IMG/VR virus record: IMGVR_UViG_3300043399_000877
Span: 248,001-312,000 of that record
Length of the DNA: 64,000 bases
Strand: one strand, 5' to 3'
Below, one piece after another: positions 193-35,253 of the stretch (the stretch's first letter is position 1; each line of letters starts with the position of its first letter). A program made the position numbers and the translations under genes. The notes beneath the pieces were generated by a model. The model was not told where the DNA came from. It searched no databases and saw only the letters and a list, made by a program, of their open reading frames with translations.

Positions 193-1419
193 ATGGATAT
201 AGGGTTTATAGGTCTTGGAAAATTAGGCAAGGCCTGTGCAGAAGTTATTGCAAAAAAAGGATATAATGTAGCTGGTTATGATATAGCGCCGGTTACTAGC
301 GAAGTTGTGGCAGTAAAAAACACCATTAAAGACTGTGTGACTGACCGCGATATAGTATTTGTTGCAGTACCTACACCACATAGTCCAGAATACGATGGTA
401 GATATCCTACAATGCATTTGCCGCCTAAAGATTTTGATTATTCTATTGTAAAGTCGGTGATAACAGAAGCCACCAGTCACATGAATAAAAATCAAATACT
501 GGTGTTAATATCAACAGTGCTTCCCGGAACAGTTCGTAGAGAATTTCAACAATTAGTAAAAAATGTAAAATTCGTGTACAACCCATATTTAATTGCAATG
601 GGGTCTGTCGAGTGGGACATGGTAAATCCAGAGATGGTTATTATTGGAACTGACCACGGGTCGATTACTGATGAAGCTGCGGATCTTATTGATTTTTACA
701 AAAATATTATGGAAAATGACCCGAAGTACCATGTTGGGACCTGGGACGAAGCAGAATGTATAAAGATTTTTTATAATACATGGATTAGCACTAAAATCGG
801 GCTTTCTAATATGATAATGGATGTATCAGAAAGACTTGGAAATATAAATGTAGATATAGTAACAACTGCACTGTCACAAGCATCAATGCGCATTACTGGC
901 CCGCAGTACATGAAAGCTGGTATGGGCGACGGCGGCGCATGTCATCCACGTGACAACATTGCATTGCGTTATTTGGCAAAAGAGCTTGATTTAAAGTACG
1001 ATCTTTTTGACGCCATTATGGGCGCCAGAGAACAACAAGCGTTTAATTTAGCAAATGAGTTAGTAACACACTCACAAAAAAATGGCTATCCAATTTATAT
1101 TCATGGTAAAGCATATAAGCCAAAAGTTTCATATGAAGATGGTAGTTACAGTATTTTGATTGGTGAATATTGTAAAAAATTAGGTGTTGAGCCCAGCTAT
1201 ATTGATCCGTTGACTGGTGACAACAACGTTCCTGTTGGTCCCTGTGTTATTCTGTTGGCCCATTCGCCAAGCACTACCTACAAATATACTAGACAAAACA
1301 ATACTGATGTGTTATATTGTGAAATACCCGATGGCAGTATCGTAGTTGATCCATGGAGATCTTATTATAATGATAGCTGCACAGTTATTCATTATGGAAA
1401 CACTCGAAAAGATGTATGA
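193..1419 (+). CDS. UDP-glucose/GDP-mannose dehydrogenase family protein
   Basis: GFIGLGKLG Rossmann motif, VAVPTP, STVLPGT, KIFYN, catalytic-Cys motif GGACHPRD and GKAYKP. AAGGA RBS precedes ATG 193. Confidence 0.88.
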   Translation: MDIGFIGLGKLGKACAEVIAKKGYNVAGYDIAPVTSEVVAVKNTIKDCVTDRDIVFVAVPTPHSPEYDGRYPTMHLPPKDFDYSIVKSVITEATSHMNKNQILVLISTVLPGTVRREFQQLVKNVKFVYNPYLIAMGSVEWDMVNPEMVIIGTDHGSITDEAADLIDFYKNIMENDPKYHVGTWDEAECIKIFYNTWISTKIGLSNMIMDVSERLGNINVDIVTTALSQASMRITGPQYMKAGMGDGGACHPRDNIALRYLAKELDLKYDLFDAIMGAREQQAFNLANELVTHSQKNGYPIYIHGKAYKPKVSYEDGSYSILIGEYCKKLGVEPSYIDPLTGDNNVPVGPCVILLAHSPSTTYKYTRQNNTDVLYCEIPDGSIVVDPWRSYYNDSCTVIHYGNTRKDV

Positions 1420-3370
1420 TATTTTTTATGTAAGTGAACACGCTCCTTCAGAAGAATACCGTAAGTTAAAACAACGATTCCCTTTTACAAAACTTGTAGC
1501 ATCGTTTGATGATGCAAGGCAACAGTCACTTACTGACTTTTTTTGGGTAGTATGGGACGACTTGATCCCTCTTGAAACTTTTAACTTTGACTACGCCCCA
1601 GATGAGTGGAGCAAGAATTATATTCACTTATTTTTAAATTCGGAACATTATGATGGTATTTCGTTAATTCCAAAACATGCGCAAATAACCAATAAAGAAA
1701 TACAGCATAGATTTTTTATAAATCATAAAAAGGTTGAAATAATTGCAAGTATGCCCAAACCTTTTGACGTGTTTGTAATTGAAGACTACTCAGAGTACGA
1801 ACTTGCTTTTGAAACAACTACGACAGAAATGTTTTGGATGGTTAGTAATAACTTAACATATGACCATCAATTTGTTGAATCTTTCTATATAAGTCATCAC
1901 AACAGGTATGATAGAAATGAAAACCATGCCTTTGTACACGAAGCAAACGAGCAACGATTATACAATGGTATTTTTTTATTATCAAAGAATAAAAAAATAA
2001 GCAAAAGAGAAGTAGATTATCGTTTTTTAATATCTAGAAAAGAATGGGACACAACCGCAAGTGGCCCAGTGCAATATGACATTTTTGAAATAACCACTTA
2101 TGATGATTACCTAAACGCGATGAAAAACTCTAAAACAGAAATGTTTTGGGCAACGCATCCAAGTATACAATTTGTAGACGATTTTGAATTTTTGTATTTT
2201 AGTCATGACAACGACTATGACAGATCGGAAAATCATGCATTTATACACAAAAATGGTGATCAAGAAAGCTACAGCGGGGTCTTTTTGTTCAGTAAAAGGC
2301 GCCCAGTTTCAAATCGTGAAATAACCTATAGATTTTTAATAAATGCAAAGCAATGGGATTTGGTGGCAAGTGAACCAAAAATATATGACAGTTTTTATAC
2401 AAAATCTTACAAAGATTATCTAAATGCACTAGAATCAACAAAAACTGAAATGTTTTGGATAATCCCACCACATGTAGAGTTGCCATCTACTTTTGATTTT
2501 AAGTATTTTGTTGATTTAAAAAACGAGCACTCTCGAACAAACACCCATGTATTCTTAAATGGAAAATATTATGATGGGGTTATGTTGTCAACCAAACATA
2601 GGCCATTAACTCAACATGAATATGATTATAATTTTGTAGCAAATAGGATTGAAGTAGAGCATCCTAAGCTACAGACTACCCCGAAGTCTTTTGATATAAT
2701 TTTCATAAGTTACCAAGAACCTAATGCAGATGAGAATTATAAAAATTTAAAATCCAGATTTCCGCATGCAAAACGAGTACACGGCGTAAAAGGCATCCAC
2801 CAAGCTCATATTGAAGCTGCGAAATTGTGTGAAACTGACATGTTTTGGATTGTGGACGGTGATGCAATTGTTGTAGATGATTTCAATTTTGATTATCAAG
2901 TTCCAAAATGGGAATTTGATACGGTTCATGTTTGGAGATCGGTAAACCCAATAAATGATTTGGTATACGGCTACGGTGGCATAAAGCTATTTCCAAGAAA
3001 ATTAACTATAGAAATGGACACGTCAAAGCCAGACATGACTACTAGCATAAGTAAAAAATTCAAAGCTATGAGTTATATTTCAAATATAACCGGATTTAAC
3101 ACTGACCCGTTTAACACCTGGAAGAGTGCGTTTAGGGAATGTTGTAAATTGGCTAGCAGAACTATTGATAGACAAAAAGAAGATGAAACGTCACAAAGAT
3201 TAGCCACGTGGTGCTCAGTTGGAACCGATAAACCTTATGGCAAATATGCGTTGGACGGTGCAAGGTTGGGATCTATGTATGGAACTCAAAATTCAAATAA
3301 TACTGAGCTTTTGAAAAAAATTAATGATTTTGAATGGTTAAAAGAGCAATTTGATGCTAGAAATTTATGA
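1412..3370 (+). CDS. Tandem-repeat GT-A-like glycosyltransferase (4 degenerate repeats plus an intact C-terminal domain)
   Basis: Five ~100-115 aa units (YDIF...TEMFW...H.F...Y.G..L..K). The last unit has WIVDGD (DxD) and GYGGIKLFP. Confidence 0.65.
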   Translation: MYDIFYVSEHAPSEEYRKLKQRFPFTKLVASFDDARQQSLTDFFWVVWDDLIPLETFNFDYAPDEWSKNYIHLFLNSEHYDGISLIPKHAQITNKEIQHRFFINHKKVEIIASMPKPFDVFVIEDYSEYELAFETTTTEMFWMVSNNLTYDHQFVESFYISHHNRYDRNENHAFVHEANEQRLYNGIFLLSKNKKISKREVDYRFLISRKEWDTTASGPVQYDIFEITTYDDYLNAMKNSKTEMFWATHPSIQFVDDFEFLYFSHDNDYDRSENHAFIHKNGDQESYSGVFLFSKRRPVSNREITYRFLINAKQWDLVASEPKIYDSFYTKSYKDYLNALESTKTEMFWIIPPHVELPSTFDFKYFVDLKNEHSRTNTHVFLNGKYYDGVMLSTKHRPLTQHEYDYNFVANRIEVEHPKLQTTPKSFDIIFISYQEPNADENYKNLKSRFPHAKRVHGVKGIHQAHIEAAKLCETDMFWIVDGDAIVVDDFNFDYQVPKWEFDTVHVWRSVNPINDLVYGYGGIKLFPRKLTIEMDTSKPDMTTSISKKFKAMSYISNITGFNTDPFNTWKSAFRECCKLASRTIDRQKEDETSQRLATWCSVGTDKPYGKYALDGARLGSMYGTQNSNNTELLKKINDFEWLKEQFDARNL

Positions 3371-4199
3371 ACTATTAGACAGATTTGAGATACTGTATCC
3401 CAATAATTCAAAAATTATTGACTTACGTCGATCCTACATCGATCGTGACTTGTCAAGTATTTTTAGGATTGTAACAGATTCGAATAAAGAAGATTTGCGA
3501 AAACTAATATTAGAAAATAATATCTGGAAGTTATGGAATATATTATATGAATTTAAAGACACGCAGTTTGTAAGTGCATTTAAGCAATTAACCATATCCG
3601 AAACTGCCTACGACAAAGACTGTTTTAGTCGCGGCCAGTTGCAAAGTAAGCAATGGTTAGTATCAGAAATCAAAAATCTTAATTTGGATTTGGGTACAGT
3701 TTTTTTGTGTGCTGGGTGGTATGCAACTCTTGCTGTCATGATTTTTGAAAGCGGAATAAAAGTAGACAAGATAAGAAGTTTCGATATAGACCCAACGACT
3801 GTTGCAATAGCAGAAGTTTTTAATAAACCGTGGTTTGTTGATCAATGGAGGTTTAAAGCAATAGTTGATGACATATTTAACATAAATTATGATTCGCATA
3901 CTTGGCAATTTTGGAGCAATGCAAATAACCGTATGAGCTATCCAATAACTGACGTTCCGGATACAATAATAAATACCAGTTGCGAACACATTAAAGATTT
4001 TGATTTATGGTATAAAAAGATACCAGAAAACAAATTAATAATTCTGCAAGGAAACAATTATTTTGAGGTTGAAGAGCACGTAAATTGTTCAAAAGACTTA
4101 GCCGAGTTTAGTAAAAAAGCACCTATGAATAAAGTATTATACGAGGGTGAGCTTGAGCTTCCAAAATATAAAAGGTTTATGAAAATTGGATTTAAGTAA
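3354..4199 (+). CDS. Class I SAM-dependent methyltransferase-like protein
   Basis: FLCAGWYA motif I-like loop, IRSFDIDP acidic strand, INTSCEH. Confidence 0.6.
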   Translation: MLEIYELLDRFEILYPNNSKIIDLRRSYIDRDLSSIFRIVTDSNKEDLRKLILENNIWKLWNILYEFKDTQFVSAFKQLTISETAYDKDCFSRGQLQSKQWLVSEIKNLNLDLGTVFLCAGWYATLAVMIFESGIKVDKIRSFDIDPTTVAIAEVFNKPWFVDQWRFKAIVDDIFNINYDSHTWQFWSNANNRMSYPITDVPDTIINTSCEHIKDFDLWYKKIPENKLIILQGNNYFEVEEHVNCSKDLAEFSKKAPMNKVLYEGELELPKYKRFMKIGFK

Positions 4200-4410
4200 A
4201 TTATCATTAAGAGAATTGCAAAAAGAAAGCGCAAGGGCCTTGATGACTATGCAAGCTACAAATAACAATATATGGAAGTTTAACTCCCAAGCACATCATA
4301 ATAGCCAAAATTGGTACTGTGCAGTAATTAATTGGTACGTTGAGCAATATGGTGACTTGCCCAGTCGAGTTGGCCCTGGAAAGGACATAAAGTTAATACA
4401 AGATGTATGA
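4186..4410 (+). CDS. Small hypothetical protein (74 aa), Trp/Asn-rich
   Basis: ORF overlaps both neighbours, as in an operon. No family recognised. Confidence 0.6.
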   Translation: MDLSKLSLRELQKESARALMTMQATNNNIWKFNSQAHHNSQNWYCAVINWYVEQYGDLPSRVGPGKDIKLIQDV

Positions 4411-5479
4411 TTATAAAAATATAAAAACAATTCACTTGGAAGTTACTCAAAATTGCCAAGCAAGTTGCCCTATGTGCGATCGCAATCAAAACGGTGGAGC
4501 ATTAAATCCACATATAGATTTATCCGAGTTAACACTAGAAGACTGTAAAAACATATTTCTTCCTGATTTCGTAAAACAATTAAAGACCATGTACATGTGT
4601 GGGAATCTGGGCGATCCTATTGTTGCTCGCGATACCTTAGAAATATTTAGGTATTTTAGACAGCATAATCCCACTATGTGGCTGTCAATGAATACAAATG
4701 CAGGAGCAAGAGATGCCGATTGGTGGAAGGAACTTGCTAACATTTATGGACGCATGGGAACAGTTATTTTTAGTGTAGATGGATTATCAGACACAAATCA
4801 TATTTATAGGCAGGGAGTAAACTGGAATGCAGTTCAGCGATCCATGCAAAGTTTTATCGGTGCTGGTGGTAGAGCCAGGTGGGATTTTTTAATTTTTGAT
4901 CATAACCAACATCAGGTTGAAGAAGCTGAAGCATTATCAAAGCAATGGGGTTTTGAAAAATTCGTTGCTAAAAAAACTGGAAGATTTGTAACTTCTAACG
5001 TGCAACCGAAAGAAACTCATCAAGCAGTTAATCGAAAAGGCGAAACAACTGTTGAACTTAAAAAACCCGAAGAAAAATTTGTAAATTCCGCTTTAAAAAA
5101 ACAAGATTCTATTATTAGCAAATATGGAAGCATGGAAGAATATTATGATGCTGCACCTATTGTTTGCAAAGTAAAAGACGAGGGAAGTTTGTTTATCACT
5201 GCTGAGGGGTTGGCCCTACCGTGTTGCTGGACAGCCGGTCGGATGTATAAATGGTGGCACAAAGATCCCCACGTTGAACAAATATGGGATTTTATAAATG
5301 CAGTTGGCGGAAAATCAGCACTCGATGCTAAAAATGGATTAGAGAACGTTTTTAAAACAGGCATATTTGATCTAATAGAAAACAGTTGGAGCAAGCCAAG
5401 TTGTAAAGATGGAAAGTTAAAAGTGTGTTCAGTAAAATGTGGTACTGAGTTCGATCCTTTTAGTGAACAGTTTAAATAA
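4403..5479 (+). CDS. Radical SAM enzyme with C-terminal twitch/SPASM-type Cys cluster
   Basis: CQASCPMC, MCGNLGDP, TNAG, FSVDG. C-terminal C...PCC...CSVKC. Confidence 0.92.
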   Translation: MYDYKNIKTIHLEVTQNCQASCPMCDRNQNGGALNPHIDLSELTLEDCKNIFLPDFVKQLKTMYMCGNLGDPIVARDTLEIFRYFRQHNPTMWLSMNTNAGARDADWWKELANIYGRMGTVIFSVDGLSDTNHIYRQGVNWNAVQRSMQSFIGAGGRARWDFLIFDHNQHQVEEAEALSKQWGFEKFVAKKTGRFVTSNVQPKETHQAVNRKGETTVELKKPEEKFVNSALKKQDSIISKYGSMEEYYDAAPIVCKVKDEGSLFITAEGLALPCCWTAGRMYKWWHKDPHVEQIWDFINAVGGKSALDAKNGLENVFKTGIFDLIENSWSKPSCKDGKLKVCSVKCGTEFDPFSEQFK

Positions 5480-5489
5480 TGGATACACA

Positions 5490-6500: not shown

Positions 6501-6508
6501 TTAAAAAT

Positions 6509-7528: not shown

Positions 7529-7530
7529 AA

Positions 7531-8655
7531 ATGAACACATATTGTAATTTAGCAAATACGGGACTTTATGTTTCTATAAAGGGAGATATAAGTCATTGTT
7601 GTATACAAAAAAACAGACAAAAAATCGACCTTGGCAATTATACTGATGCAAGCGAATTTTATAAAGAAAACTCGCATCTGTCATCAATACGACAGGACTT
7701 AAATCATAAAAATATAAAAAACTCTGCATGTCAAAATTGCTGGAAGGTCGAAGAATCTGGGTTAGCAAGCAAACGACAGCGCGAAAATGAATTAGAAACA
7801 ACTTCTGAAACAGAACTGCGTCACTTAGACTTAAGACTTACAAATAAGTGTAATTTGCAATGTAGAATGTGTTCTCCTACCGAAAGCAGTCAAATTGAAA
7901 AATTGGCTTACGAGTTAAACGATCCCATATTAATGCAATTTTCAAAAAATAAATTAACTGATTATGTTGATTTGTCAACTTTTCTAAATAGCTTTTTAAA
8001 CGTTAAAACATTAAAAACGATTCGGTTTGCAGGTGGTGAGCCATTTATAATGGAAGAAGTTAATGAGTTTTTGTCAAAGTTAATTGAAAATAACATGACA
8101 GATCTTGAAATTGAGTTTATAACCAATTGTACTAGTGCAAGAACGCAAGTAATTAATAAGTTGGAAAAATTTAAAAGAGTTGTGTTGGGTTGCAGTATCG
8201 ACGGTGTGGAAGATGAATTCGAGTATCAAAGGTATCCTGCAAAGTGGTCATCAGTTGAAAAAAACTTTATAAAATTTTATAATAGCAAGCTTCATGTAAA
8301 CATAACACCGTGTATAAGCTTTCTTACATATCAGACTTTGGATAAATTTTTTAATTGGGCCAATCAGTTTCCTAACGCAAGGGTTTTTTATAACGAAGTT
8401 GAACAAAGTTTTATGGACTTTAGGCTGATCCCAATTGAGCATAGACAAGATTTTATAAGTAAATTTAAAGATATAAAATTTGCAAATGCGCAAAATAATT
8501 GGATACAATTTCAAAAAAAATTAATGTATGAAGAAAAAACATTGACCGACGAAGATAAAAAACTTTTAATACACTATATTAAGATATGGGATTACAAGAC
8601 AAACAAGAAATTTTTAGAATCGTATCCGTGGGCAGAAAAATTAATAAATGAATAA
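7531..8655 (+). CDS. Radical SAM enzyme with N-terminal twitch/SPASM-like cluster
   Basis: N-terminal YC...HCC...CQNC, then CNLQCRMC, GGEPF, TN, SIDG. Confidence 0.92.
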   Translation: MNTYCNLANTGLYVSIKGDISHCCIQKNRQKIDLGNYTDASEFYKENSHLSSIRQDLNHKNIKNSACQNCWKVEESGLASKRQRENELETTSETELRHLDLRLTNKCNLQCRMCSPTESSQIEKLAYELNDPILMQFSKNKLTDYVDLSTFLNSFLNVKTLKTIRFAGGEPFIMEEVNEFLSKLIENNMTDLEIEFITNCTSARTQVINKLEKFKRVVLGCSIDGVEDEFEYQRYPAKWSSVEKNFIKFYNSKLHVNITPCISFLTYQTLDKFFNWANQFPNARVFYNEVEQSFMDFRLIPIEHRQDFISKFKDIKFANAQNNWIQFQKKLMYEEKTLTDEDKKLLIHYIKIWDYKTNKKFLESYPWAEKLINE

Positions 8656-9604: not shown

Positions 9605-9638
9605 CAATATCTAAAAATAGCTAAACAATAAATATTGC

Positions 9639-16208: not shown

Positions 16209-16249
16209 TTTACTATTTTTAAAAATTAAATATAACAAAAAGGTGTATA

Positions 16250-17227
16250 ATGGACTGGAATGCTGTAGTAATTATTAGAACAAATGCTAAGTCTATTGCA
16301 GAATCTGTAACAAATGAAATAAAGAACGAGTTCCCATACAGAACTTCTGAATTTTATAAATGTACTAGAGATTTGGAATTTATATTGCAAGCATTGTCGA
16401 CATGCATACAATTAGACAATACGCAAGCTGTTGATGATGTAATACGCATGTTCTACAAAGGTGGCAAACTTAGGTTAAAGTCGATCGATGTTGAGTTAAT
16501 AGCATATGATAAACTTAAATTAAAACTTTTTGAGCTATTGTCTAAAAATGAAATAAAAGATTCTACTAAAGAAATTATTTCAAATTGCATTATTTTATTA
16601 AAAACTTCGCTGAACAGTGGGTATATTGGTGTCGAACAATCCTGGGAATATAGAAAAAATTATAAAATTTTTACATCAGACCCTGTGCCTAAATATTTAG
16701 AAAATGTGATAGATAATATATTGATACATTGTCCTATGCAGGATTCTAAAACCACAGAATTTGTAATATTAAAAACAACTTATGATGACATAAAGTTGCG
16801 AGAAAACTTAACAAAACATATTTTTAAAAATGATGCTAGTGGATTTCATGAAATAGCTCCCATAACTGCACCGTTGGTTTATTATTGCTGTAATAAAACC
16901 AATCCTGAATCTAATTCTTTTTTGAACATAGGTTTGCACGGCGGCGCAGCACTTGCAGAAATTAGAAATAATGGTTTTGATTTTAGTTTTATAGGCTGCA
17001 CATCTGATAATGTTTCTAACAAAACAGAGAAGGAACTTATTAAACGCATTCAATCTCGATTTAATTTAGATTTTGATATATGCTTGCCGTGCGTTGCGTT
17101 TTGCATCGGAAAAGCAAACAGGGAAGTTAATACTATCAATGTATACAAATGTAAAGATGGGACTGAATTAAGATATAGAACAACACTTGAACCATCGGTA
17201 ATAAAACCAAAGGTTCTTTTTACTTAA
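16250..17227 (+). CDS. Fusion of an N-terminal helical (KCxRD) domain and a nitroreductase-like domain
   Basis: KCTRDLEFIL in the N-terminal half. The C-terminal half has RKNYKIFTSDPVP...HCP, TAPLV, GFDFSFIGC and FCIGK, resembling the nitroreductase fold. Confidence 0.55.
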   Translation: MDWNAVVIIRTNAKSIAESVTNEIKNEFPYRTSEFYKCTRDLEFILQALSTCIQLDNTQAVDDVIRMFYKGGKLRLKSIDVELIAYDKLKLKLFELLSKNEIKDSTKEIISNCIILLKTSLNSGYIGVEQSWEYRKNYKIFTSDPVPKYLENVIDNILIHCPMQDSKTTEFVILKTTYDDIKLRENLTKHIFKNDASGFHEIAPITAPLVYYCCNKTNPESNSFLNIGLHGGAALAEIRNNGFDFSFIGCTSDNVSNKTEKELIKRIQSRFNLDFDICLPCVAFCIGKANREVNTINVYKCKDGTELRYRTTLEPSVIKPKVLFT

Positions 17228-18074
17228 TATTATTTTTTAAAAACCTTAGTAATGGCCTAACGCCCACTGGCCGGTCATCGAACGTTTTAGCCAAATGGAT
17301 TGCTTTTGTAGGTTTTAAATTAAAATCTTTTAAAACTTGCTGATATTCTTTTTCATAAGTCCTCCAAAAATATTCGGGACCAAAGTATTCCATAAATTTT
17401 ATGCCCATGCTTACGATAGCCTGACTATTCATATTAAAATCGTTCATTATAGTAATCGGGCCATTCTGGGTGCCCCTTGCAAATCTTAGGCCAATTCTGT
17501 TTCCGCCCAGTCCGCCCTTGCTGAGGCTTATGCAAAACGTATCTATTGCTGGGTGTGAAAAATCAAATTCTATATCTCGTATACAACTTATCCACGCTCC
17601 GTCAATGTGTACTTTTATCCCTAAATTATGACAGGCGTCCAATATTTCTTTCATTTGAGGGTGAATATCACCAAAGAACGGAAATGGCATAGCTATTAGT
17701 AGTTCTTTATTTGGGTCCAATGTTTCAACGGTTGTATACACAATGTTGGGATTTAACCTCCAATGATATTTGTAATCATTTTCAAATATCATCAAGTTGC
17801 CTTTTCGTTGATATAAATCGTCTATGTATTGAGTACATCCCTGTGTAATGTCGAGACGACTAAATTTATCTAAACCCGAAAACGTGCTGTATTTGTGGTC
17901 TTTAATCCATTTTACAAAATTTTCTTTAAATATCTCATCTAAATTACTAGTATGTATTGGATTTTCTACATAAAATTTATCATAAAATTTGTTTATGTTA
18001 GAGTCGTACATTGGTTGTGGACGATCATACTGCAACCATTCTTCTGTGTATTGTCTATGTGTGCTGTCTCTCAT
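17220..18074 (-). CDS. PLP-dependent fold-type I enzyme (aminotransferase-like)
   Basis: VHIDGAW (PLP-binding DxA) and SLSKG...NRIG (Schiff-base Lys). It is the only inverted gene inside the + strand island. Confidence 0.75.
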   Translation of the reverse strand: MRDSTHRQYTEEWLQYDRPQPMYDSNINKFYDKFYVENPIHTSNLDEIFKENFVKWIKDHKYSTFSGLDKFSRLDITQGCTQYIDDLYQRKGNLMIFENDYKYHWRLNPNIVYTTVETLDPNKELLIAMPFPFFGDIHPQMKEILDACHNLGIKVHIDGAWISCIRDIEFDFSHPAIDTFCISLSKGGLGGNRIGLRFARGTQNGPITIMNDFNMNSQAIVSMGIKFMEYFGPEYFWRTYEKEYQQVLKDFNLKPTKAIHLAKTFDDRPVGVRPLLRFLKNNIK

Positions 18075-18086
18075 ATAAATATTTAT
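18074..18086. promoter_or_regulatory. Back-to-back ATAAATA late-promoter-like motifs (palindrome ATAAATATTTAT)
   Basis: TATAAATA on + (18074-18081) and ATAAATA on - (18080-18086) lie between divergent genes. The T4 late consensus is TATAAATA. Confidence 0.55.
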
Positions 18087-18131
18087 GTGTACTTTATAAT
18101 GCAAATAATAATGTGATTTTCGGAGAAATTA

Positions 18132-19229
18132 ATGAAAAAAAAGCCATTTTGCTATGCTCCATGGGTTTCTGTAAGATATCGGAATACGACAGATAATAGA
18201 GTGTCACCATGTTGCCAATGGAACGATGAACACTTTACAGGTAACATAACAGAATATTATAATTCTAAATTTTTAAAAAATGTAAAATCAAATATGATTA
18301 AACATAACATGAATGAAATATCCAAAACATGTATAGAATGTATAAATGCAGAAAAACATAATGTTGAATCCTCACGAGAATATTACAATAATGCTGTGCG
18401 CATGGGAACGTTTGTTCCTGGACAACTTAACAAACTAGATCTTAGACCAGATACTCTATGCAATTTAAAGTGCATTATGTGCAGTCCAAAAAGTTCTAGT
18501 TTAATTGAAGAAGAGTTAATAAAACACGAAAATTTTCAACCATTTGAGTACTCTGATACAACTGACGTTGTCGACTTAGATCTATCAAATTTAAAAGCTT
18601 TAAAATTAGTTGGTGGTGAGCCTACAATAAGTAAAAAAATGTTTTACATCATGGATCATTTAATAGAAAAAGATATCGCAAAAAATATAAGCATTGAATA
18701 TATAACAAATTGCACAAGTGTTAATAAAAAATGGTTATCTCGTGTTGAACAATTTAAAAAACATATGGTTACAATGTCAGTAGACGCAACTGGTAAGTGT
18801 TTTGAGTACATTCGTCATGGTACTTCATGGGAACTAGTTGAAAGAAATATATTAAAGTTAACGGAAATAGCAGACGATTATGATTTTAATATAGTTGCAC
18901 AAGCAACAAACTTTGCAGTAATTGAAGATTGGTTTGAATATTTTATTCAATATGACATTCAGCATATCAGAATGTCGCATTTTTACGGAGATTATCCATT
19001 GGGCCTTAATGTTATACCTGATTACCTAAAACAAGAAAAAATAAATTATCTTGAAAAATTTGATCATCCACTTGCAACTCAGGCAATCACTTATCTTAAA
19101 AATTCTAAGTTTAGTAAAAAAACATTTGACTTATTTTGGAAAAATACTGAAATACGCGACAAAAGAAGAAATGTAAGCATTTTTGATGTGAGTCCGGTAT
19201 TTGAAAAAATGAAAAATAGTCACATGTAA
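18132..19229 (+). CDS. Radical SAM enzyme with N-terminal twitch/SPASM-like cluster
   Basis: FCYAPW...PCC...CIEC, then CNLKCIMC, GGEPT, SVDA. Confidence 0.92.
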   Translation: MKKKPFCYAPWVSVRYRNTTDNRVSPCCQWNDEHFTGNITEYYNSKFLKNVKSNMIKHNMNEISKTCIECINAEKHNVESSREYYNNAVRMGTFVPGQLNKLDLRPDTLCNLKCIMCSPKSSSLIEEELIKHENFQPFEYSDTTDVVDLDLSNLKALKLVGGEPTISKKMFYIMDHLIEKDIAKNISIEYITNCTSVNKKWLSRVEQFKKHMVTMSVDATGKCFEYIRHGTSWELVERNILKLTEIADDYDFNIVAQATNFAVIEDWFEYFIQYDIQHIRMSHFYGDYPLGLNVIPDYLKQEKINYLEKFDHPLATQAITYLKNSKFSKKTFDLFWKNTEIRDKRRNVSIFDVSPVFEKMKNSHM

Positions 19230-19276
19230 CCGGATAGGCAAGATACTAGAATAAATATGTTAAATTGGGGATCAAC

Positions 19277-20008
19277 ATGGATAACAAGTTCTTTATACCT
19301 GACAATGTAACAGGTATAGTTATAAAATTGTCAGGTGGTGCTGACAGTTCTATACTATATTATGGGTTATGTAAACACATAGTTGAGAACAATTTAAGTA
19401 TACCTATATATGTAACATCTATGGACACAAATAGAAAACCTTGGTACAGCCATTATGCAAAAAAAGTCATAAATTTTACAAAACAAGAAACTGGAATATC
19501 ACCCGTAGAGCATAGAATTCATTTCTTAGACGGCAACTGGACTATGGATGATTATGTACAAACTCAACATGATTTAATGATGTCAGTTATTGATGACAAA
19601 CTTGCAAATGTGGCGTATAGCGGGTTAACTCAAAATCCAACTAGAAAAGATTTACACAGAACTCGAAAACATAAAGATTTTAACAAAAACGGTTTAAAAT
19701 ATCTTGATGAAAATCTAAACGGAACAGATTCTAGTAGAAATGATCATTCAAATAAAAAAGTAGTAAATTACAACGGGCACTTCATAATGATCAATCCGTT
19801 TATACACAAAACAAAAAAAGAAGTATTTAACTGGTATAAACATTATAATGTACTAGATACTCTTTTTCCATTAACTTATAGTTGTGAAGAATCAGATAAT
19901 GAATACAAGAAGTTAATTAAAGTTGAAGACGGGTTTGCAGAAATGTCGCACTGTGGATTTTGTTGGTTTTGCATGGAACGTATATACGCATTTGGAAGAC
20001 TCGTATGA
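19277..20008 (+). CDS. QueC-like PP-loop ATPase
   Basis: KLSGGADS PP-loop, NPF..TK, TYSC...HCGFCWFCMER Zn site. Confidence 0.8.
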   Translation: MDNKFFIPDNVTGIVIKLSGGADSSILYYGLCKHIVENNLSIPIYVTSMDTNRKPWYSHYAKKVINFTKQETGISPVEHRIHFLDGNWTMDDYVQTQHDLMMSVIDDKLANVAYSGLTQNPTRKDLHRTRKHKDFNKNGLKYLDENLNGTDSSRNDHSNKKVVNYNGHFIMINPFIHKTKKEVFNWYKHYNVLDTLFPLTYSCEESDNEYKKLIKVEDGFAEMSHCGFCWFCMERIYAFGRLV

Positions 20009-21228
20009 CACCATGTATTTTGCCTTGGATAAATTTTAGTACTAATACATTTGGTAGACCAAGAACTTGCGGTTATGCCGATCAAGCTGTAGTCAAAAGA
20101 GCACAAGTTAAATTAAAAGGCAGTAGTATAGAAGACGAATGGAATAACGATTATTTTAAAAAGATACGCAGAGACTTTTTACAAGGCGAGTGGCCTGAAA
20201 ATTGCAAACGATGTGAGTACGTGGAACAACTAAATGGTTCCAGTAAGCGTATAGAAGAAAACAAATATCATTATGAGTCAAATAAACATTTAATTGATTC
20301 TACAGCGCCAGACGGTAGCGTCCCATATTATCCGCCCAATATTGATATTAGAGTGGGTACAATATGTAATTTAAAGTGCATTCATTGCGGAACTGGTGCA
20401 AGCAGCAAGTGGAATGAAGACAAATCCTTATTAAATAAATACCCAAATACTGAATTTTATAACATTGACAACAAATGGATAGAACAAGATAGCTTTATTT
20501 GGGATAACATAAAAGAAAACTTGAGTAGTACCCGTAAGTTTAATTTCTTAGGAGGCGAACCGTTTGCAAATAAGCAACATAACCGGTTTATTAAAGAAGT
20601 ATGTGACACTGATGCTGCTAAAGAAATAACACTGACATATGTGAGCAACGGAACACTGTTAACAGACACCATTTTTCAGCAACTTGTGAAATTTAAAGAA
20701 GTCATTATCAGACTAAGTTTAGATGCTATCGGAATTCCGGGAGAATATTTTAGATTTCCGATATCATGGAAAACATTTAAAACAAAACTAGAATTAATGC
20801 AAAAATATGCAAACAATAATCCGCATGTTGACATTGGGGTCCAGTGGACTTGTAGCAATATAAGCATGTTCTATCTAGTTGAAACATATGATTTTATAAA
20901 ACAGCATTATCCTAATATTAAGTTTATTTTTGCGAATCATGTTGAGTGGCCAATTCATATGAGTGCGCAAGTTTTGCCGCATGAATTAAAAAAAATAACT
21001 CAAGATAAAATTGAGTCATATAATTTTGAAAATAACTCCCAGTACGTTCCATTTTATATAAGCCATATGTGCGAAAAAGATTTATGGGGTACTCACGGAA
21101 ATACATTTATGAATTATTTAGATGACCTAGACGCAGCCAGAAAAATAAGTTGGAAAGACAGTTTTAAAGAAATGGAATTACAGAAATATGATCCCAGATG
21201 CAACAACCATATGAATGAAATGAAATAA
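20005..21228 (+). CDS. Radical SAM enzyme with N-terminal twitch/SPASM-like cluster
   Basis: PCILPW...TC...CKRC, then CNLKCIHC, LGGEPF, SNGT, SLDA. Confidence 0.92.
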   Translation: MTPCILPWINFSTNTFGRPRTCGYADQAVVKRAQVKLKGSSIEDEWNNDYFKKIRRDFLQGEWPENCKRCEYVEQLNGSSKRIEENKYHYESNKHLIDSTAPDGSVPYYPPNIDIRVGTICNLKCIHCGTGASSKWNEDKSLLNKYPNTEFYNIDNKWIEQDSFIWDNIKENLSSTRKFNFLGGEPFANKQHNRFIKEVCDTDAAKEITLTYVSNGTLLTDTIFQQLVKFKEVIIRLSLDAIGIPGEYFRFPISWKTFKTKLELMQKYANNNPHVDIGVQWTCSNISMFYLVETYDFIKQHYPNIKFIFANHVEWPIHMSAQVLPHELKKITQDKIESYNFENNSQYVPFYISHMCEKDLWGTHGNTFMNYLDDLDAARKISWKDSFKEMELQKYDPRCNNHMNEMK

Positions 21229-21270
21229 AATAAATGTTTGTGTAATCTGGCGAGTTGGTATATATATAAT

Positions 21271-22395
21271 ATGAAAATTAATATGTCTGAAGATTTAAAA
21301 TGGAGTGAATATGATTTTACAAAAATCCCATTTGACGATATCGTACAAGTAGGTCAAAGAACTCTTTTGTATCGAGATCTTTTTACCGTTAGTTGGTTGC
21401 TTGGTCGCTTTTGCAATTACCGGTGTAGCTATTGTTGGCCATATGCAAGATCAAATACAAAAGATCATCGACCAACCGACCTATGCCTCAAAACAATTGA
21501 TGAGATCAAACGACAAGCTAGAGAAAACGGATTCAATAGTTTCCATTTCAGTCTCTCAGGAGGAGAACCAACGTTTCATCCCGGATACCTCGAGATATTA
21601 AAGTATCTTGCCGACGACACTCCGAATACAAATTATACTAGCATACACATGACCAGTAATTGTAGTAGAAATATGGCATGGTTTGAGCAATATGTTGAAT
21701 ATGCAAAACCATTTCATAGAGCAAGTATCACAGCTAGTTTACACACCGAGCATGTAAACACTCCTGAGCGAATGCAAGAATTCGCAGACAAGTTGATTTT
21801 TTGTCAAGAACATGACGTCCAGGTCACTATTAACATGGTAATGGTACCTGAGTGGTTTGAGCGTGATTGGGAAAATGCTCTATTTTTTCATGAGCAAGGC
21901 ATAAATGTAACGCTAAAACCACAAAGTGATCCCACTGCCAGTCGAGTAGTAGATGGGTATTCACAAGACATGCTTAATCGTTTATGGAACGGTATGCCAC
22001 AGCGGGCGTATACTGAAAGTAAAAGAAAATGGGCTAGTCGCCCTCAACCCAAGTTTGTAGTGCCAGTAGTTAATGGTGTTGACGACAAATCTGTACCTGC
22101 ACATATGCAGATTGAATTTGTAGACAAAAACGGAAAAAAATGGTATATGGACCAAGCAGAGCGGTTCAACGCATTTGGATTTAACAAGTTTAAAGGTTGG
22201 AGTTGCAACAGTGGTTATCAGGGAATAATCATACGCGAGCCCGACGGGAGTATAAAAAGATCATACAGTTGCCACGATGTTCCACTTGGCAATATAGAGA
22301 CTGGATTTAAATTGTTTAAATCCCCCATGCCGTGTACTACTGAAAGCTGTGTGAGTAGTGCGGATAGTAAAATACCAAAACAAAGGAAGGATTAA
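21271..22395 (+). CDS. Radical SAM enzyme with C-terminal Cys cluster (same subtype as 8648-9604)
   Basis: CNYRCSYC, SGGEPT, ASLH. C-terminal WSCNSG...SC...CTTESC. Confidence 0.92.
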   Translation: MKINMSEDLKWSEYDFTKIPFDDIVQVGQRTLLYRDLFTVSWLLGRFCNYRCSYCWPYARSNTKDHRPTDLCLKTIDEIKRQARENGFNSFHFSLSGGEPTFHPGYLEILKYLADDTPNTNYTSIHMTSNCSRNMAWFEQYVEYAKPFHRASITASLHTEHVNTPERMQEFADKLIFCQEHDVQVTINMVMVPEWFERDWENALFFHEQGINVTLKPQSDPTASRVVDGYSQDMLNRLWNGMPQRAYTESKRKWASRPQPKFVVPVVNGVDDKSVPAHMQIEFVDKNGKKWYMDQAERFNAFGFNKFKGWSCNSGYQGIIIREPDGSIKRSYSCHDVPLGNIETGFKLFKSPMPCTTESCVSSADSKIPKQRKD

Positions 22396-22399
22396 AAAC

Positions 22400-23464
22400 A
22401 TGCCAATATGTAAAGCACTCTATAACCAAGTATGTGTTGAAATCGGTGGAGTTTATAAACCATGCTGTTCATATGTTGGGGACAGTGGTATATCAGTAAA
22501 CGACATGACCCCAAATGAATTTTTAAAATCTGATTATATAGAAAATATAAGAAAAAACATGGAAGGGGATTTATGGGATTCCGGTTGCGTTGGATGCAAA
22601 GTGCGTAGTGAATCTGGGCTCCACACGTTGAAAGATACCTATGACTTTTATTGTAAATCTGATATAGGTACTTTTGAAATGATTGAAATTTCAGTAAGTA
22701 ACAAGTGTAATAACCAATGCAGAATGTGCGATTCTAGGCACAGTAGTTTATGGCAAAATACTTTGGGTTTTGGTAATTCTCCTAAATCTTATTATGATTT
22801 GCAAGCATTAATGAATAATCTAGACGGCAGTGATATAAAGGTAATAAAATATTTAGGTGGTGAACCATTAATAACTGATGAAATAAATCAAGTCTTCGAT
22901 TTTATCAAAAAAAATAAAGAAAATAAAATTTCATTTTATTTTAATACTAACCTATCAGTACCTCCAGAAAAATATCTTAGCGAATTTGAAAATATAGAAA
23001 AATTTGTGATTGGGTATAGCATTGACGGTGTAGGCGCAACTAATGAATATATAAGAGATGGAAGCAATTGGGACACTGTTGTTAGGAATTTAGATAAATG
23101 GGAAAAATTCTTTGAATCCAGATCCGATCAGAGTGAAAGATACGTCCACACCGTATTACAAGCATACAACTATCATGATATTGAAAATATATATAAGTTT
23201 AGTAGTTCGTATGGGTTAGAGCATTTTACACCTCCTATAATTGCGCCACATGAGTTTACATTAAATGCATTGCCTAAAGAGTATATAGAAAAGTATGCCA
23301 CCAGTAGAACGGCAAAATATGTTGATAACCATTCATATAATGCATCGTTGTACGATAAATTAGTAAAAACAACAATTTATCATGATAAGTTATTTCAAAA
23401 ATCAATAAATAATTTTATACCTGAATTGTATTTTTTAAGTAAGAGCAATAATGATACACCATGA
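22400..23464 (+). CDS. Radical SAM enzyme with N-terminal twitch/SPASM-like cluster
   Basis: IC...PCC...CVGC, then CNNQCRMC, LGGEPL, SIDG. Confidence 0.92.
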   Translation: MPICKALYNQVCVEIGGVYKPCCSYVGDSGISVNDMTPNEFLKSDYIENIRKNMEGDLWDSGCVGCKVRSESGLHTLKDTYDFYCKSDIGTFEMIEISVSNKCNNQCRMCDSRHSSLWQNTLGFGNSPKSYYDLQALMNNLDGSDIKVIKYLGGEPLITDEINQVFDFIKKNKENKISFYFNTNLSVPPEKYLSEFENIEKFVIGYSIDGVGATNEYIRDGSNWDTVVRNLDKWEKFFESRSDQSERYVHTVLQAYNYHDIENIYKFSSSYGLEHFTPPIIAPHEFTLNALPKEYIEKYATSRTAKYVDNHSYNASLYDKLVKTTIYHDKLFQKSINNFIPELYFLSKSNNDTP

Positions 23465-24104: not shown

Positions 24105-24947
24105 ATGACAGTTAAACCTTTTTTTATAAGTTTGCCTAGATCGAGATCTACAATACTTTATGACAGGATGGAAGGATATGCGCTTACAAAGTTGGGGATG
24201 TCTAGGATAGTTGGGCATCCTGAATTCTTTTTAGAATTTTCTCACACTGACATGTATTTTAACACAAAAACACAGCGGTATGATGACTTAGAATTATACC
24301 CTATTCCTAATGATAATAGAATTGATATGCATTTTATATATCCACATGTATTCAATAATTCTATTGATAGAATACGACATAAAATGAATGTGCTCAAACA
24401 TGAAAAAGACAACGGTAGAGATTACTACTTCAAGGGTACTATGAATATTTTTGATAGTTATCAAGAAATAATTGATTTTTTTGCTGACAGAAAAATTATA
24501 ATTACCAGAAGGCATGATATAGTTGAAATGGCAATATCATATCTTTATGCAAGAAATGTAAAGTTGTTCCACGCAAAAGGTAACAATTATGACTATTATA
24601 CTTCTGTACTGGCAAAGGGAACAGAGATTAATGAATCTGAATTAGAAGATATGCCCGAATACATAAAGTATTTGACATTTGTTGATAACGTTGAACATTA
24701 CATAAAAGATAAAAATTACAATTATTGTGTTACATACTATGAAGATATGGAAACTGATGACATGATAAACTCAAAGATAGATGAAATATACGAAACAACT
24801 GAATGGCGAAATAGCGTAAAAACAACGGAGGCATCTACACCTATAAAGGTTGAAAAAAAATATTCAAATGTAATTAAGAATTATACAGACGTTAGATCAC
24901 ATTTAGAAAATATAGTTAAGGAAATAAGAAGTGAAAAACTTTTATGA
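24105..24947 (+). CDS. Sulfotransferase-like protein (PAPS-dependent, Stf0-like)
   Basis: N-terminal SLPRSRST resembles the PRSGST 5'-PSB loop. Also R...S (TRRHDIVEMAIS) and YED. Confidence 0.6.
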   Translation: MTVKPFFISLPRSRSTILYDRMEGYALTKLGMSRIVGHPEFFLEFSHTDMYFNTKTQRYDDLELYPIPNDNRIDMHFIYPHVFNNSIDRIRHKMNVLKHEKDNGRDYYFKGTMNIFDSYQEIIDFFADRKIIITRRHDIVEMAISYLYARNVKLFHAKGNNYDYYTSVLAKGTEINESELEDMPEYIKYLTFVDNVEHYIKDKNYNYCVTYYEDMETDDMINSKIDEIYETTEWRNSVKTTEASTPIKVEKKYSNVIKNYTDVRSHLENIVKEIRSEKLL

Positions 24948-25515
24948 AATTAATGACTTGCCCATTTTGGATTTAACAAGTGAGTACGACAACCTAATAA
25001 AAGAAGGTAGAATATGGTATTCTGAAAGAGAACCAAATCAAATATGTTTAAATTCAACAATCAATAAACTTAATGATATGCATTACGGTGCTGGCAGCTT
25101 GGTGTTTGATTGGGACTTGGTTGGAACACTTGACGATTCGGGAAACGTCATAACGTCGCCGACGTTAAGAGAAACTCCATTAGAGGAAAGTGATTTTACA
25201 GAATTATGCTCTCAGTTTAAAGGAACGTTATTCGAGGATGCATATGTTGCATTACAAAAAAAATACAATCTTGGTAGAGTAAGGATAATGCGATCAAAAC
25301 CTAAAACTTGTTTATCTTGGCATTACGACTATGATGTCAGAGTACATTATCCATTAAAAACGTATGAGGGGTGTTTGATGGTTATAGAAGATGAAGTTTG
25401 CCACCTTACTGCTAATAAATGGTGGTATACAGAAACTCAAAAAATGCATACTGCATTCAACGCAAGTGCCCAGGAGAGAATACATTTAGTAGCTACAGTC
25501 ATTTCTAGTAAGTGA
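24931..25515 (+). CDS. Aspartyl/asparaginyl beta-hydroxylase-like 2OG-Fe(II) oxygenase
   Basis: RVRIM, WHYD, RVHYPL, HTAFN, RIHLV. Confidence 0.8.
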   Translation: MKNFYEINDLPILDLTSEYDNLIKEGRIWYSEREPNQICLNSTINKLNDMHYGAGSLVFDWDLVGTLDDSGNVITSPTLRETPLEESDFTELCSQFKGTLFEDAYVALQKKYNLGRVRIMRSKPKTCLSWHYDYDVRVHYPLKTYEGCLMVIEDEVCHLTANKWWYTETQKMHTAFNASAQERIHLVATVISSK

Positions 25516-35228: not shown

Positions 35229-35253
35229 GTGCTTAATCCTCTATTGCGCCTTA

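Follow-up and report, generated by a model that had tools for sequence, protein, structure and literature searches.

Arrays of radical SAM genes have been reported in large T4-related phages before, namely in the Campylobacter T4-like phages CP220 and CPt10 (Timms et al., 2010, PMC2853527) and in the marine T4-like genome TARA_ERS488813_N000010 (Nishimura et al., 2017, PMC5332604). These phages carry 11-12 radical SAM genes, which in CP220/CPt10 include an "interchangeable module" of five, but in neither case was the array explained. Outside phages, twitch-type radical SAM enzymes with an auxiliary cluster include the sugar- and nucleoside-tailoring enzymes BtrN and BlsE of the butirosin and blasticidin S pathways, the logic of which combines a nucleotide sugar or uronate, a glycosyltransferase (GT), a radical SAM enzyme, an aminotransferase and methyltransferases, as well as the RiPP radical SAM/SPASM maturases (TvgB, SkfB, PapB and ScfB-like), whose clusters also stack several tailoring enzymes. 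Virus-encoded glycosylation machineries, as in chloroviruses, Megavirinae and mycobacteriophages (virion glycosylation), use virus-borne GTs and nucleotide-sugar enzymes to produce lineage-specific virion glycans, although a radical SAM array is not known from any of them.

The locus described here lies in a roughly 382-kb uncultured aquatic jumbo phage (IMG/VR record IMGVR_UViG_3300043399_000877), in a 64,000-nucleotide stretch (positions 248,001 to 312,000 of that record) referred to as the window. Phage origin is supported by a T4-type PolB with 45-50% identity to those of jumbo phages. A preliminary description, made from the sequence alone, had reported 13 intact radical SAM genes of four architectures within window positions 4403-23464, and this observation was confirmed. 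All 13 ORFs carry CX3CX2C and hit PF04055, 12 of them above the gathering score; the exception, o5439 (ORFs are named by their first window position), scores 28.2 against 29.5 but is related to o6509 (Table 1). The split of architectures is exactly as had been claimed, with seven enzymes bearing an N-terminal C..CC..CxxC cluster, three (o4403, o5439 and o6509) a C-terminal C..CC..CxxC cluster, two (o8648 and o21238) a different C-terminal Cys cluster, and one combining B12-binding and radical SAM domains. The seven N-terminal-twitch proteins pass the curated cut-off of NCBIfam NF033640 (N_Twi_rSAM) over their full length, the four-Cys domain preceding the CX3CX2C core; however, no characterized member of this family could be found, such that membership does not indicate function. 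The paralogues are old, at 21-41% identity, and the genes overlap or abut on one strand, with a single exception.

Table 1. Predicted features of the island within the window; cut-offs are those of the respective family models, and counts out of 80 refer to the related IMG/VR loci compared.
Position (strand)	Predicted product	Supporting observations
1..168 (-)	5' part of a 206-aa DegT/DnrJ/EryC1-like gene, cut by the window edge and divergent from o175	Full ORF at L247:18678-19298(-); weak precomputed PF01041 hit; co-occurs with o175 in 24 other viral loci
175..1419 (+)	Nucleotide-sugar dehydrogenase (UDP-glucose/GDP-mannose dehydrogenase family)	PF00984 and PF03721 above cut-off; TIGR03026 145.8 bits, below cut-off 189.8; inside the island in 10 of 80 loci
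1346..3370 (+)	Conserved anchor, five tandem GT-A-like repeats	Only repeat 1 (WDD) and repeat 5 (DGD) keep the acidic motif; C-terminal domain AF2 pLDDT 88.9; no Pfam or NCBIfam hit; D68 and D70 invariant
3351..4199 (+)	Conserved anchor, class-I (Rossmann) SAM-methyltransferase-like protein, by motif only	G-rich motif I and FDIDP motif; no Pfam or NCBIfam hit; in 43 of 80 loci; positional equivalent in related locus L060 gives a weak Spermine_synth hit
4186..4410 (+)	Conserved 74-aa predicted three-helix-bundle protein, translationally coupled to o3351 and o4403	68-82% identical in 69 of 80 loci; 1680 homologues, at least 120 of them 73-91 aa and mostly 74 aa; AF2 pLDDT 90.2; no PDB fold match; differences by codon position 1051/537/2442
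4403..5479 (+)	Core radical SAM, C-terminal twitch-like cluster	PF04055; orthologue in 74 of 80 loci at 48-79% identity and in the minimal module of contig L084
5439..7528 (+)	Two variable paralogues of o4403 (5439-6500 and 6509-7528)	41% identical to each other, 27-32% to o4403; PF04055 plus weak SPASM
7531..8655 (+)	N-terminal-twitch radical SAM (variable)	NF033640 224.8 bits, cut-off 170
8648..9604 (+)	Radical SAM, paralogue of o21238 (variable)	PF04055 45.3 bits; 24% identical to o21238
9639..11054 (+)	Core N-terminal-twitch radical SAM, best-conserved gene of the island	NF033640 425 bits; 80-92% identity in at least 80 of 247 IMG/VR relatives; 4521 metagenome relatives; only 6 scattered MAG hits in GTDB
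11032..12501 (+)	B12-binding radical SAM (class B)	PF02310 and PF04055 above cut-off; no NCBIfam subfamily cut-off reached (PhpK family 76.5 against 600)
12501..13565 (+)	N-terminal-twitch radical SAM (variable)	NF033640 237.4 bits
13552..14445 (+)	Unknown protein, possible 2OG/Fe oxygenase	HxD motif only (HQD and a later H); no family hit; in 16 of 80 loci
14446..15051 (+)	Methyltransferase-like protein (weak)	Methyltransf_24 19.7 bits, cut-off 26.3
15024..16208 (+)	N-terminal-twitch radical SAM (variable)	NF033640 218.6 bits
16250..17227 (+)	Cys-rich protein of unknown function	No Pfam or NCBIfam hit
17220..18104 (-)	Possible fold-type-I PLP enzyme, only reverse-strand gene inside the island	27-bit hit to valine-pyruvate transaminase; SLSK motif; in 7 of 80 loci
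18132..19229 (+)	N-terminal-twitch radical SAM (variable)	NF033640 222.3 bits
19265..20008 (+)	PP-loop ATPase, QueC-like	SGGADS and C-terminal CxxCxxC; QueC E 2.6e-4, below cut-off
19960..21228 (+)	N-terminal-twitch radical SAM (variable)	NF033640 296.7 bits
21238..22395 (+)	Core radical SAM with its own C-terminal Cys cluster	PF04055 56.2 bits; orthologue at 73-85% identity in 46 of 80 loci and at 67% in the L084 minimal module
22358..23464 (+)	N-terminal-twitch radical SAM (variable)	NF033640 195 bits
23451..24104 (+)	PP-loop ATPase, QueC-like	PF06508 32 bits, above cut-off 22; SGGADS and CxxCxxC
24105..24947 (+)	Sulfotransferase-like protein (weak)	Sulfotransfer_3 E 0.0095, below cut-off
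24931..25515 (+)	Asp/Arg-hydroxylase-family 2OG/Fe oxygenase; last gene of the island	PF05118 43.2 bits, above cut-off; family in 12 of 80 loci; three tandem copies in island variant L278

Of the accessory functions that had been proposed from the sequence, the NDP-sugar dehydrogenase, the two QueC-like PP-loop ATPases, the oxygenase o24931 and the repeat GT o1346 are well supported, whereas the sulfotransferase, both methyltransferases, the second 2OG oxygenase (o13552), the PLP enzyme and the DegT-like gene rest on weak evidence, and the "nitroreductase-like" assignment of o16250 was without any hit. The preliminary description had also overlooked the 74-aa gene and the true extent of the island, which runs at least 10 kb beyond the left edge of the window, where a 14th radical SAM gene is found; the region in the window is the right-hand 25 kb of a one-strand accessory island of at least 36 kb. 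Late-type promoters had been inferred from ATAAATA motifs, but this was not supported, since ATAAATA occurs 15 times against 27.9 expected and TATAAATA four times against 6.9, i.e., the motif is depleted rather than enriched, and several copies lie 1-8 nt from start codons.

The island is not unique, as had been implied, but belongs to a widespread, uncharacterized family found in hundreds of viral contigs from uncultured aquatic phages. Related loci share the anchors o1346, o3351, the 74-aa protein, o4403, o9639 and o21238, the last three being radical SAM enzymes of three different architectures, and between these anchors the content turns over rapidly. In 80 loci, 638 of 1503 ORFs carry CX3CX2C and form 117 clusters at 40% identity or more. 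The exchanged shell consists mostly of twitch-type radical SAM paralogues, accompanied by B12-radical SAM enzymes, PP-loop ATPases, 2OG/Fe oxygenases, methyl- and sulfotransferase-like proteins, aminotransferase-like proteins and an NDP-sugar dehydrogenase. A minimal module of two single GT-like domains plus the three core radical SAM enzymes was detected in a distant contig (L084). The closest isolate homologues are only 22-28% identical, and the core, the N-twitch expansion and the synteny with tail-fibre-like genes were not described for CP220/CPt10 or the TARA genome. With respect to this synteny, tail-fibre-like genes (a 4522-aa protein with CBM_5_12 and a Collar-domain protein) directly precede the island on the same strand, here and in at least 16 other contigs.

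Several of these features suggest a sugar-derived product. A Foldseek search with the AF2 model of the o1346 C-terminal domain places it in the GT-A/GT2 fold (RmlT, CgT, SunS, WrtF, GtrB), and BFVD fold matches include giant-virus and mycobacteriophage GTs, although TM-scores to solved GTs are low (0.3-0.46). GT-A enzymes use nucleotide-sugar donors, and the island contains the NDP-sugar dehydrogenase, with its DegT-like neighbour. In a profile search, the N-terminal Cys domain aligned to the twitch domain of the sugar-type dehydrogenase BtrN (E 5e-4), and the profile also hit the cytosylglucuronate decarboxylase BlsE (E 2.4e-4); these similarities are weak, the BlsE model scoring 20.8 bits against a cut-off of 400, and there are no orthologues of the other butirosin or blasticidin S pathway genes. 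No flippase, polymerase or other glycan-assembly genes were seen, and PF05118 enzymes hydroxylate proteins or lipids as well as other substrates. The enzyme set (uronate-forming dehydrogenase, GT, twitch radical SAM, aminotransferase, methyltransferases and amide-forming ATPases) resembles sugar/nucleoside antibiotic tailoring and could instead make a free natural product similar to a nucleoside or aminoglycoside antibiotic, produced during infection to manipulate the host or kill competitors and not attached to the virion. Island variants carry a Trp halogenase, an AMP-binding enzyme and a fatty-acid-desaturase-family protein, which do not point to sugars. The first two of these speak for a free product, as do a MenE-like ligase, a LysA-like decarboxylase and a saccharopine-dehydrogenase-like gene next to the island. 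However, this reading appears unlikely, as no exporter or self-resistance gene was seen, the locus keeps its position after the tail-fibre-like genes, and no known cluster was matched above the family cut-offs.

The nearest relatives of the twitch enzymes among solved or curated families are mostly peptide maturases, including TvgB (8VPO, E 3e-14), SkfB and the PapB, ScfB-like and WgkB families, raising the possibility that the array, with the Asp/Arg-hydroxylase-type oxygenases, directly modifies a ribosomal product, i.e., the adjacent tail-fibre proteins or the 74-aa protein, by cross-links, epimerization, methylation or hydroxylation, and that the GT-A domain glycosylates it. The coupling of this strongly conserved small protein to the first core radical SAM gene, the PF05118 protein-hydroxylase family, the position after tail-fibre-like genes and the presence of the peptide glycosyltransferases SunS/ThuS and ppGalNAc-T among the structural neighbours of the GT-A domain are consistent with this view. 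Nevertheless, it remains doubtful. No PqqD/RRE domain, leader peptidase or exporter appeared in any Pfam scan of the island, no precursor or leader was recognizable, the C-twitch enzymes begin with CX3CX2C at residues 18-38, leaving no room for an RRE, and the auxiliary cluster domain of the N-twitch enzymes is N-terminal rather than C-terminal as in the RiPP maturases. The 74-aa protein, predicted with confidence to be a folded helical bundle without conserved Cys, is 70-82% conserved while the enzyme set changes completely, unlike a precursor matched to its maturases.

Two further readings are also less likely than protein or peptide maturation. Hypermodification of a DNA base, for example a 7-deazapurine or a pyrimidine adduct, to evade host restriction would make the variable content a reflection of an arms race. 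Two QueC-like ATPases with the Zn motif lie in the island, FolE and a QueE-like radical SAM lie elsewhere in the window, and there is precedent for a radical SAM enzyme acting on phage DNA and for combinatorial hypermodification clusters (PMC8989533). However, no 5-hmU DNA kinase, aGPT-Pplase or TGT/DpdA family hit appeared in the island scans, the QueC-like proteins score far below the QueC equivalog cut-off (27 against 150 bits) and belong to the shell, and the core contains a GT-A-like protein but no recognizable DNA-binding enzyme. Remodelling of host membrane lipids or lipid A by C-C coupling, hydroxylation, desaturation or methylation, the least likely alternative, is suggested by a hit of the N-twitch profile to the tetraether synthase Tes (7TOL, E 4e-8), which has an N-terminal auxiliary cluster (PMC9433317), and by a lipid-biosynthesis B12 radical SAM among the best NCBIfam hits of the B12 enzyme. 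PF05118 includes lipid hydroxylases, and variant L278 has a fatty-acid-desaturase-family (FA_desaturase) gene together with its PF05118 genes. All of these similarities are at superfamily level and far below the family cut-offs, no acyltransferase or other lipid-pathway gene is present in the window island, and the desaturase occurs in only one variant.

The interpretation offered in the preliminary description, an assembly line decorating a glycan, virion proteins or nucleobases, is thus partly supported: the locus is a co-oriented, tightly packed multi-enzyme tailoring locus in a phage, no characterized pathway matches it, and glycan or virion decoration is the best-supported target, although modification of a protein or peptide, of DNA bases, or of lipids remains possible. 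The 13 radical SAM genes and their architectures, phage origin, family-wide anchors with variable content, minimal module, NDP-sugar dehydrogenase inside the island, predicted GT-A fold with its invariant acidic pair, and placement after tail-fibre-like genes were established by the analysis, whereas the substrate, the reactions and the acceptor are inferred. Tentatively, it is proposed that the island encodes a combinatorial pathway in which an NDP-sugar would be oxidized to a uronate by o175 and aminated by the DegT-like or PLP enzymes, remodelled by the three core radical SAM enzymes into a conserved unusual sugar scaffold, and transferred to an acceptor by the GT-A domain. The acceptor may, given the position of the island after tail-fibre-like genes, be a virion (tail-fibre) component, this being the least certain step. 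The shell enzymes would then perform lineage-specific radical C-H chemistry (oxidation, epimerization, deoxygenation, C-methylation), ATP-dependent amidation of carboxylates, hydroxylation, methylation and sulfation, and the outcome would be a different decoration in each phage lineage.

The plus-strand run of genes that makes up the island within the window is almost free of gaps, with most neighboring genes overlapping by 1-74 nt or lying within 0-41 nt of each other, and thirteen of its ORFs carry the CX3CX2C motif and match the radical SAM family PF04055. Twelve of these score above the gathering cut-off of 29.5 bits, whereas the remaining one, o5439, scores 28.2 bits but is 41% identical to the radical SAM protein o6509. 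The central observation of the preliminary description, a set of 13 intact radical SAM genes, is real and statistically secure, and the Cys patterns give exactly the four classes that it proposed, namely seven proteins with an N-terminal C..CC..CxxC cluster, three with the same cluster at the C-terminus, two with a different C-terminal Cys group and one with a B12-binding domain. The paralogs are only 21-41% identical, so that they represent an old, diversified set, and recent duplication as the source of the 13 genes can be rejected. Coordinates of the features considered here are collected in the table below.

Features of the window, the upstream region and related loci
Sequence	Coordinates	Strand	Feature and observations
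Window	1-168	-	Fragment of a 206-aa DegT-like ORF cut by the window edge
Window	175-25515	+	Island as contained in the window; run of 24 genes
Window	4186-4410		74-aa ORF overlapping the stop of o3351 and the start of o4403
Window	4403-23464		Span of the 13 CX3CX2C ORFs
Window	17220-18104	-	Single reverse-strand gene inside the island
Window	25516-31226	-	Convergent five-gene block abutting the island end: saccharopine-dehydrogenase-like protein, 422-aa PP-loop (SGGLDS) protein, MenE/FadD-like adenylating enzyme, unknown 189-aa protein, LysA-like PLP decarboxylase
Window	31243-32358	-	Cys-free tail-fiber-like protein with an Mtd_N domain and a weak Chlorovirus glycoprotein repeat
Window	33966-36399	-	VWA/metallopeptidase-like (DUF2201) plus MoxR-type AAA ATPase pair
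Window	39896-43202	-	QueE-like radical SAM, GTP cyclohydrolase I (FolE), DoxX-family protein, phosphoribosyltransferase
Window	43840-45932	-	Nucleotide-sugar epimerase (phrog_540, E 2e-82) next to a weak glycosyltransferase-like gene; a second sugar module, outside the island
Window	1-33000 versus 33000-64000		G+C steps from about 0.34 in the island (0.315 in the region upstream of the window) to about 0.41 in the replication region
L247 (same contig, upstream of the window)	1-8759 (contig 228.9-237.6 kb)		Tail-fiber-like module: end of a 4522-aa protein (CBM_5_12 weak, FG-GAP faint), then proteins of 208, 687 (Collar, faint), 553, 504 and 296 aa with 0-3 Cys each
L084 (493.6-kb 'Bdellovibrionia' MAG contig)	8225-14826		Minimal module: two single GT-like domains, o9639-like gene, IS1-like ORF, o4403-like gene, o21238-like gene
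L275 (island variant)	19763-21413		Flavin Trp-halogenase-family gene with an AMP-binding enzyme
L278 (island variant)	15021-21389		FA_desaturase-family gene, three tandem Asp/Arg-hydroxylase genes, class-III aminotransferase

All seven N-cluster proteins match the NCBIfam family NF033640 (N_Twi_rSAM, 'twitch domain-containing radical SAM protein') over their full length, scoring 224.8, 425, 237.4, 218.6, 222.3, 296.7 and 195 bits against the curated cut-off of 170. In these proteins a twitch-like auxiliary-cluster domain lies ahead of the radical SAM core; C11, C29(/C30), C92 and C95 are invariant in the alignment, weak PF13186 hits fall at the N-terminus, and in a profile search the domain aligns to the twitch domain of BtrN (E 5e-4). 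The B12-binding enzyme o11032 combines PF02310 and PF04055 in one chain (36.8 and 57.7 bits, both above cut-off), as in class B radical SAM methyltransferases, but does not belong to a characterized subfamily (PhpK, RiPP C-methyltransferase, HpnR and others), its best hit being 76.5 bits against a cut-off of 600. The two proteins with the distinct C-terminal Cys group, o8648 and o21238, do not reach the viperin family cut-off of 180 bits, scoring 42.4 and 40.5 bits over the N-terminal core only. Searches of the literature for the N-twitch family, or for a described phage radical SAM cluster of this type, found no characterization, and one candidate preprint proved irrelevant. Single-sequence PDB searches were empty or returned spurious matches (ubiquitin repeats).

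Among the accessory genes, the NDP-sugar dehydrogenase o175, two PP-loop ATPases with SGGADS and a QueC-type C-terminal CxxCxxC, the Asp/Arg-hydroxylase-family oxygenase o24931 and the repeat protein o1346 are well supported. The sulfotransferase, both methyltransferases, the second oxygenase, the 'nitroreductase-like' protein and the PLP enzyme of the preliminary description are weakly supported or unverified. The o1346 protein consists of five tandem copies of a GT-A-like module, of which only the first and last keep the acidic motif; it is lost in repeats 2-4, whereas the motif in repeat 5 is DGD, with D68 and D70 invariant in 24 sequences. The C-terminal domain models confidently (pLDDT 88.9), and the nearest solved folds of the model are GT2-type GT-A glycosyltransferases, with a Foldseek probability of 1.00 and E 5e-5 to RmlT and further hits to CgT, SunS/ThuS, WrtF and GtrB (E-values to about 1e-3), although TM-scores are only 0.3-0.46. 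Among viral models it matches two uncharacterized 'uncultured Caudovirales' proteins at TM 0.87, and then viral GTs. Membership of a glycosyltransferase sequence family (Pfam GT families) is not supported, since o1346 has no Pfam or NCBIfam hit and its relatives give only sub-threshold Glyco_tranf_2_2 and DUF6492 hits.

Two features were missed by the preliminary description. The first is the 74-aa ORF, which is 68-82% identical in 69 of 80 related loci and has 1680 homologs, the 120 listed being 73-91 aa and mostly 74 aa. Substitutions in this ORF fall mainly on third codon positions (1051/537/2442). The protein is predicted to fold as a confident three-helix bundle with a short tail (pLDDT 90), and the predicted fold has no significant match in the PDB. 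The second is that the island continues to the left of the window, which is bases 248001-312000 of IMGVR_UViG_3300043399_000877, a contig of 381,886 bp; upstream of the window lie a 14th radical SAM, a block of conserved unknown genes and a DegT-like/dehydrogenase block. These are preceded by large Cys-poor proteins of a tail-fiber-like module, including the 687-aa protein, which in addition to its faint tail-Collar hit has tblastn matches to minor tail and tail-fiber proteins; PDB searches of two upstream proteins were uninformative. The same genome was assembled at 381,620 bp from a second sample.

The presence of the small conserved protein, coupled to the first core enzyme o4403 (one of the three radical SAMs with a C-terminal cluster), and the fact that the closest solved or curated relatives of the enzymes are RiPP maturases, could indicate direct maturation of a protein or peptide. 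This alternative is considered unlikely, since no PqqD or RRE family appeared in the Pfam scans of any island ORF, a test of limited sensitivity, no leader peptidase or exporter was found in window positions 1-33000, and the only small conserved ORF is predicted to encode a folded three-helix bundle, not a leader-core peptide.

The remainder of the window identifies the genome as that of a phage. It encodes a T4-type family-B DNA polymerase that is 45-50% identical to those of the jumbo phages Phosso, Atu_ph07 and 121Q, an exonuclease, the MoxR/VWA pair, the QueE-like enzyme, FolE and phosphoribosyltransferase genes, and the tail-fiber-like protein with an Mtd_N domain, which is a candidate acceptor for a virion decoration. 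Pairs homologous to the VWA/MoxR genes lie next to the island in two related loci, L060 and L086, suggesting a shared backbone arrangement. The convergent five-gene block at the island end, which may represent a polyamine or amino-acid-derived pathway, is not found in the related loci examined.

The QueC-like ATPases of the island and the nearby genes, which look like 7-deazaguanine precursor genes, would fit hypermodification of DNA bases, but this reading is considered improbable. The two ATPases score 27.2 and 19.4 bits against a cut-off of 150.3 for the QueC equivalog TIGR00364, although the PP-loop and the Zn motif are present, and no canonical QueC or DpdA/TGT-type transglycosylase was seen among the ORFs scanned, which did not include every ORF of the window or the rest of the 382-kb genome. 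No Pfam family corresponding to the 5-hmU DNA kinase or the aGPT-Pplase (amino acid:DNA transferase) that define the thymidine hypermodification cluster (PMC8989533) appeared among the island ORFs, and none of the defining transferases or kinases of known pathways was seen there.

The island is one member of a large family. The N-twitch radical SAM protein o9639 is 80-92% identical in the 80 best of 247 confirmed IMG/VR relatives and has 4521 relatives in the metagenome protein collection. Among 185,579 GTDB species it is found only in six MAG contigs of unrelated taxa, a pattern that fits mis-binned phage DNA, and a cellular origin of o9639 is rejected. No cultured phage has a close homolog: a nucleotide search of the island against phage isolates found nothing, tblastn of the three core enzymes (o4403, o9639 and o21238) against 50,697 phage records found only hits of 21-28% identity, and a plasmid search found nothing. 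Related loci share the anchors o1346, o3351 (a methyltransferase-like protein assigned by motif only), the 74-aa protein, o4403, o9639 and o21238, in that order, whereas what lies between the anchors differs. Loci with 21 kb available hold 6-13 CX3CX2C ORFs, and across the 80 loci 638 of 1503 ORFs (42%) carry the motif and fall into 117 clusters at 40% identity or more, mostly of the N-cluster and C-cluster types. Pfam searches with ten recurrent unknown island families gave almost nothing. A locus whose o9639 is 92% identical shares nearly the whole island with the window, while loci at 87-88% share only the anchors, and content therefore turns over much faster than the core diverges. By comparison, the closest PolB in IMG/VR (relatives L168-L246) is 77% identical; either the island core is more constrained than the polymerase or it moves between phages, the contigs in the two sets being non-overlapping.

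In a distant version of the island (L084), in which o9639 is 62% identical, the three core radical SAM genes sit together with two single-domain copies of the GT-like module, and this arrangement is taken here as the minimal functional unit. Bacterial-looking MoxR/DUF58 and SppA genes flank this module, and the contig could belong to either a bacterium or a huge phage. In at least 16 further contigs, the same tail-fiber-like genes are followed on the same strand by the left-hand conserved block of the island. Other variants contain further B12 enzymes, in addition to the enzymes of L275 and L278. Lipid remodeling, which rests on Tes-like similarity and on the desaturase in one variant, is the least likely of the alternatives considered.

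The preliminary description had also inferred late-type promoters from ATAAATA motifs, and this claim fails. ATAAATA occurs 15 times against 27.9 expected and TATAAATA 4 times against 6.9 expected, so that neither is enriched, and several copies lie 1-8 nt from start codons, which is too close for a T4-type late promoter with a leader. One of the four copies of TATAAATA lies 30 nt upstream of the start of the Mtd_N tail-fiber-like gene. Generic promoter and terminator scans were near chance, and a search of Rfam found no riboswitch or other RNA family. The statement that no characterized phage pathway of this size was known likewise needs qualifying, since Campylobacter phages CP220 and CPt10 carry 11 and 12 radical SAM genes, including an exchangeable five-gene module (PMC2853527), and a marine T4-like environmental genome carries 12 (PMC5332604), although neither array was explained. 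The island is a multi-enzyme tailoring cluster and phage radical SAM array with a distinctive conserved core and extreme diversity of its shell, and is both bigger and far more widespread than first described.

The interpretation given in the preliminary description is partly supported. While the gene content, the enzyme architectures and the family-wide anchors rest on direct sequence comparison, the manner in which the system works, including its substrate, product and acceptor, is inferred. The only universal non-radical-SAM enzyme of the core has a predicted glycosyltransferase fold with a conserved DxD-type pair, a nucleotide-sugar dehydrogenase and a DegT-like gene belong to the island, and twitch-type radical SAM enzymes include sugar-modifying members. 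A pathway that makes an unusual sugar-derived unit and transfers it to an acceptor is therefore tentatively favored, in which the variable shell would then decorate the unit by radical C-H chemistry, ATP-dependent amidation, hydroxylation, methylation and perhaps sulfation. The constant position after tail-fiber-like genes suggests a virion acceptor, but this link is circumstantial. Synthesis of a free antibiotic-like metabolite is a further, doubtful alternative. A more far-reaching possibility, which appears unlikely on present evidence but is not excluded, is that the island is a phage-borne combinatorial chemistry system, in which a conserved core of a GT plus three radical SAM enzymes installs a scaffold on the tail fiber or virion surface and cassette-like exchange among more than 100 radical SAM families rewrites its chemistry from lineage to lineage. 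This would be a post-translational or glycan counterpart of tail-fiber sequence diversification, and a large untapped pool of new radical SAM reactions.

Whatever its target, the family is a compact and naturally 'shuffled' library of more than 100 uncharacterized twitch-type radical SAM enzymes with a shared core, which makes substrate discovery tractable. It would give the orphan family NF033640 its first biological context, and may explain the radical SAM arrays noted in phage genomes since 2010. If the product is a virion or surface decoration, this would be the first phage system that uses radical chemistry to diversify its exterior, with a bearing on host range, on recognition by hosts, and on phage ecology in oceans and lakes, where the family is abundant.
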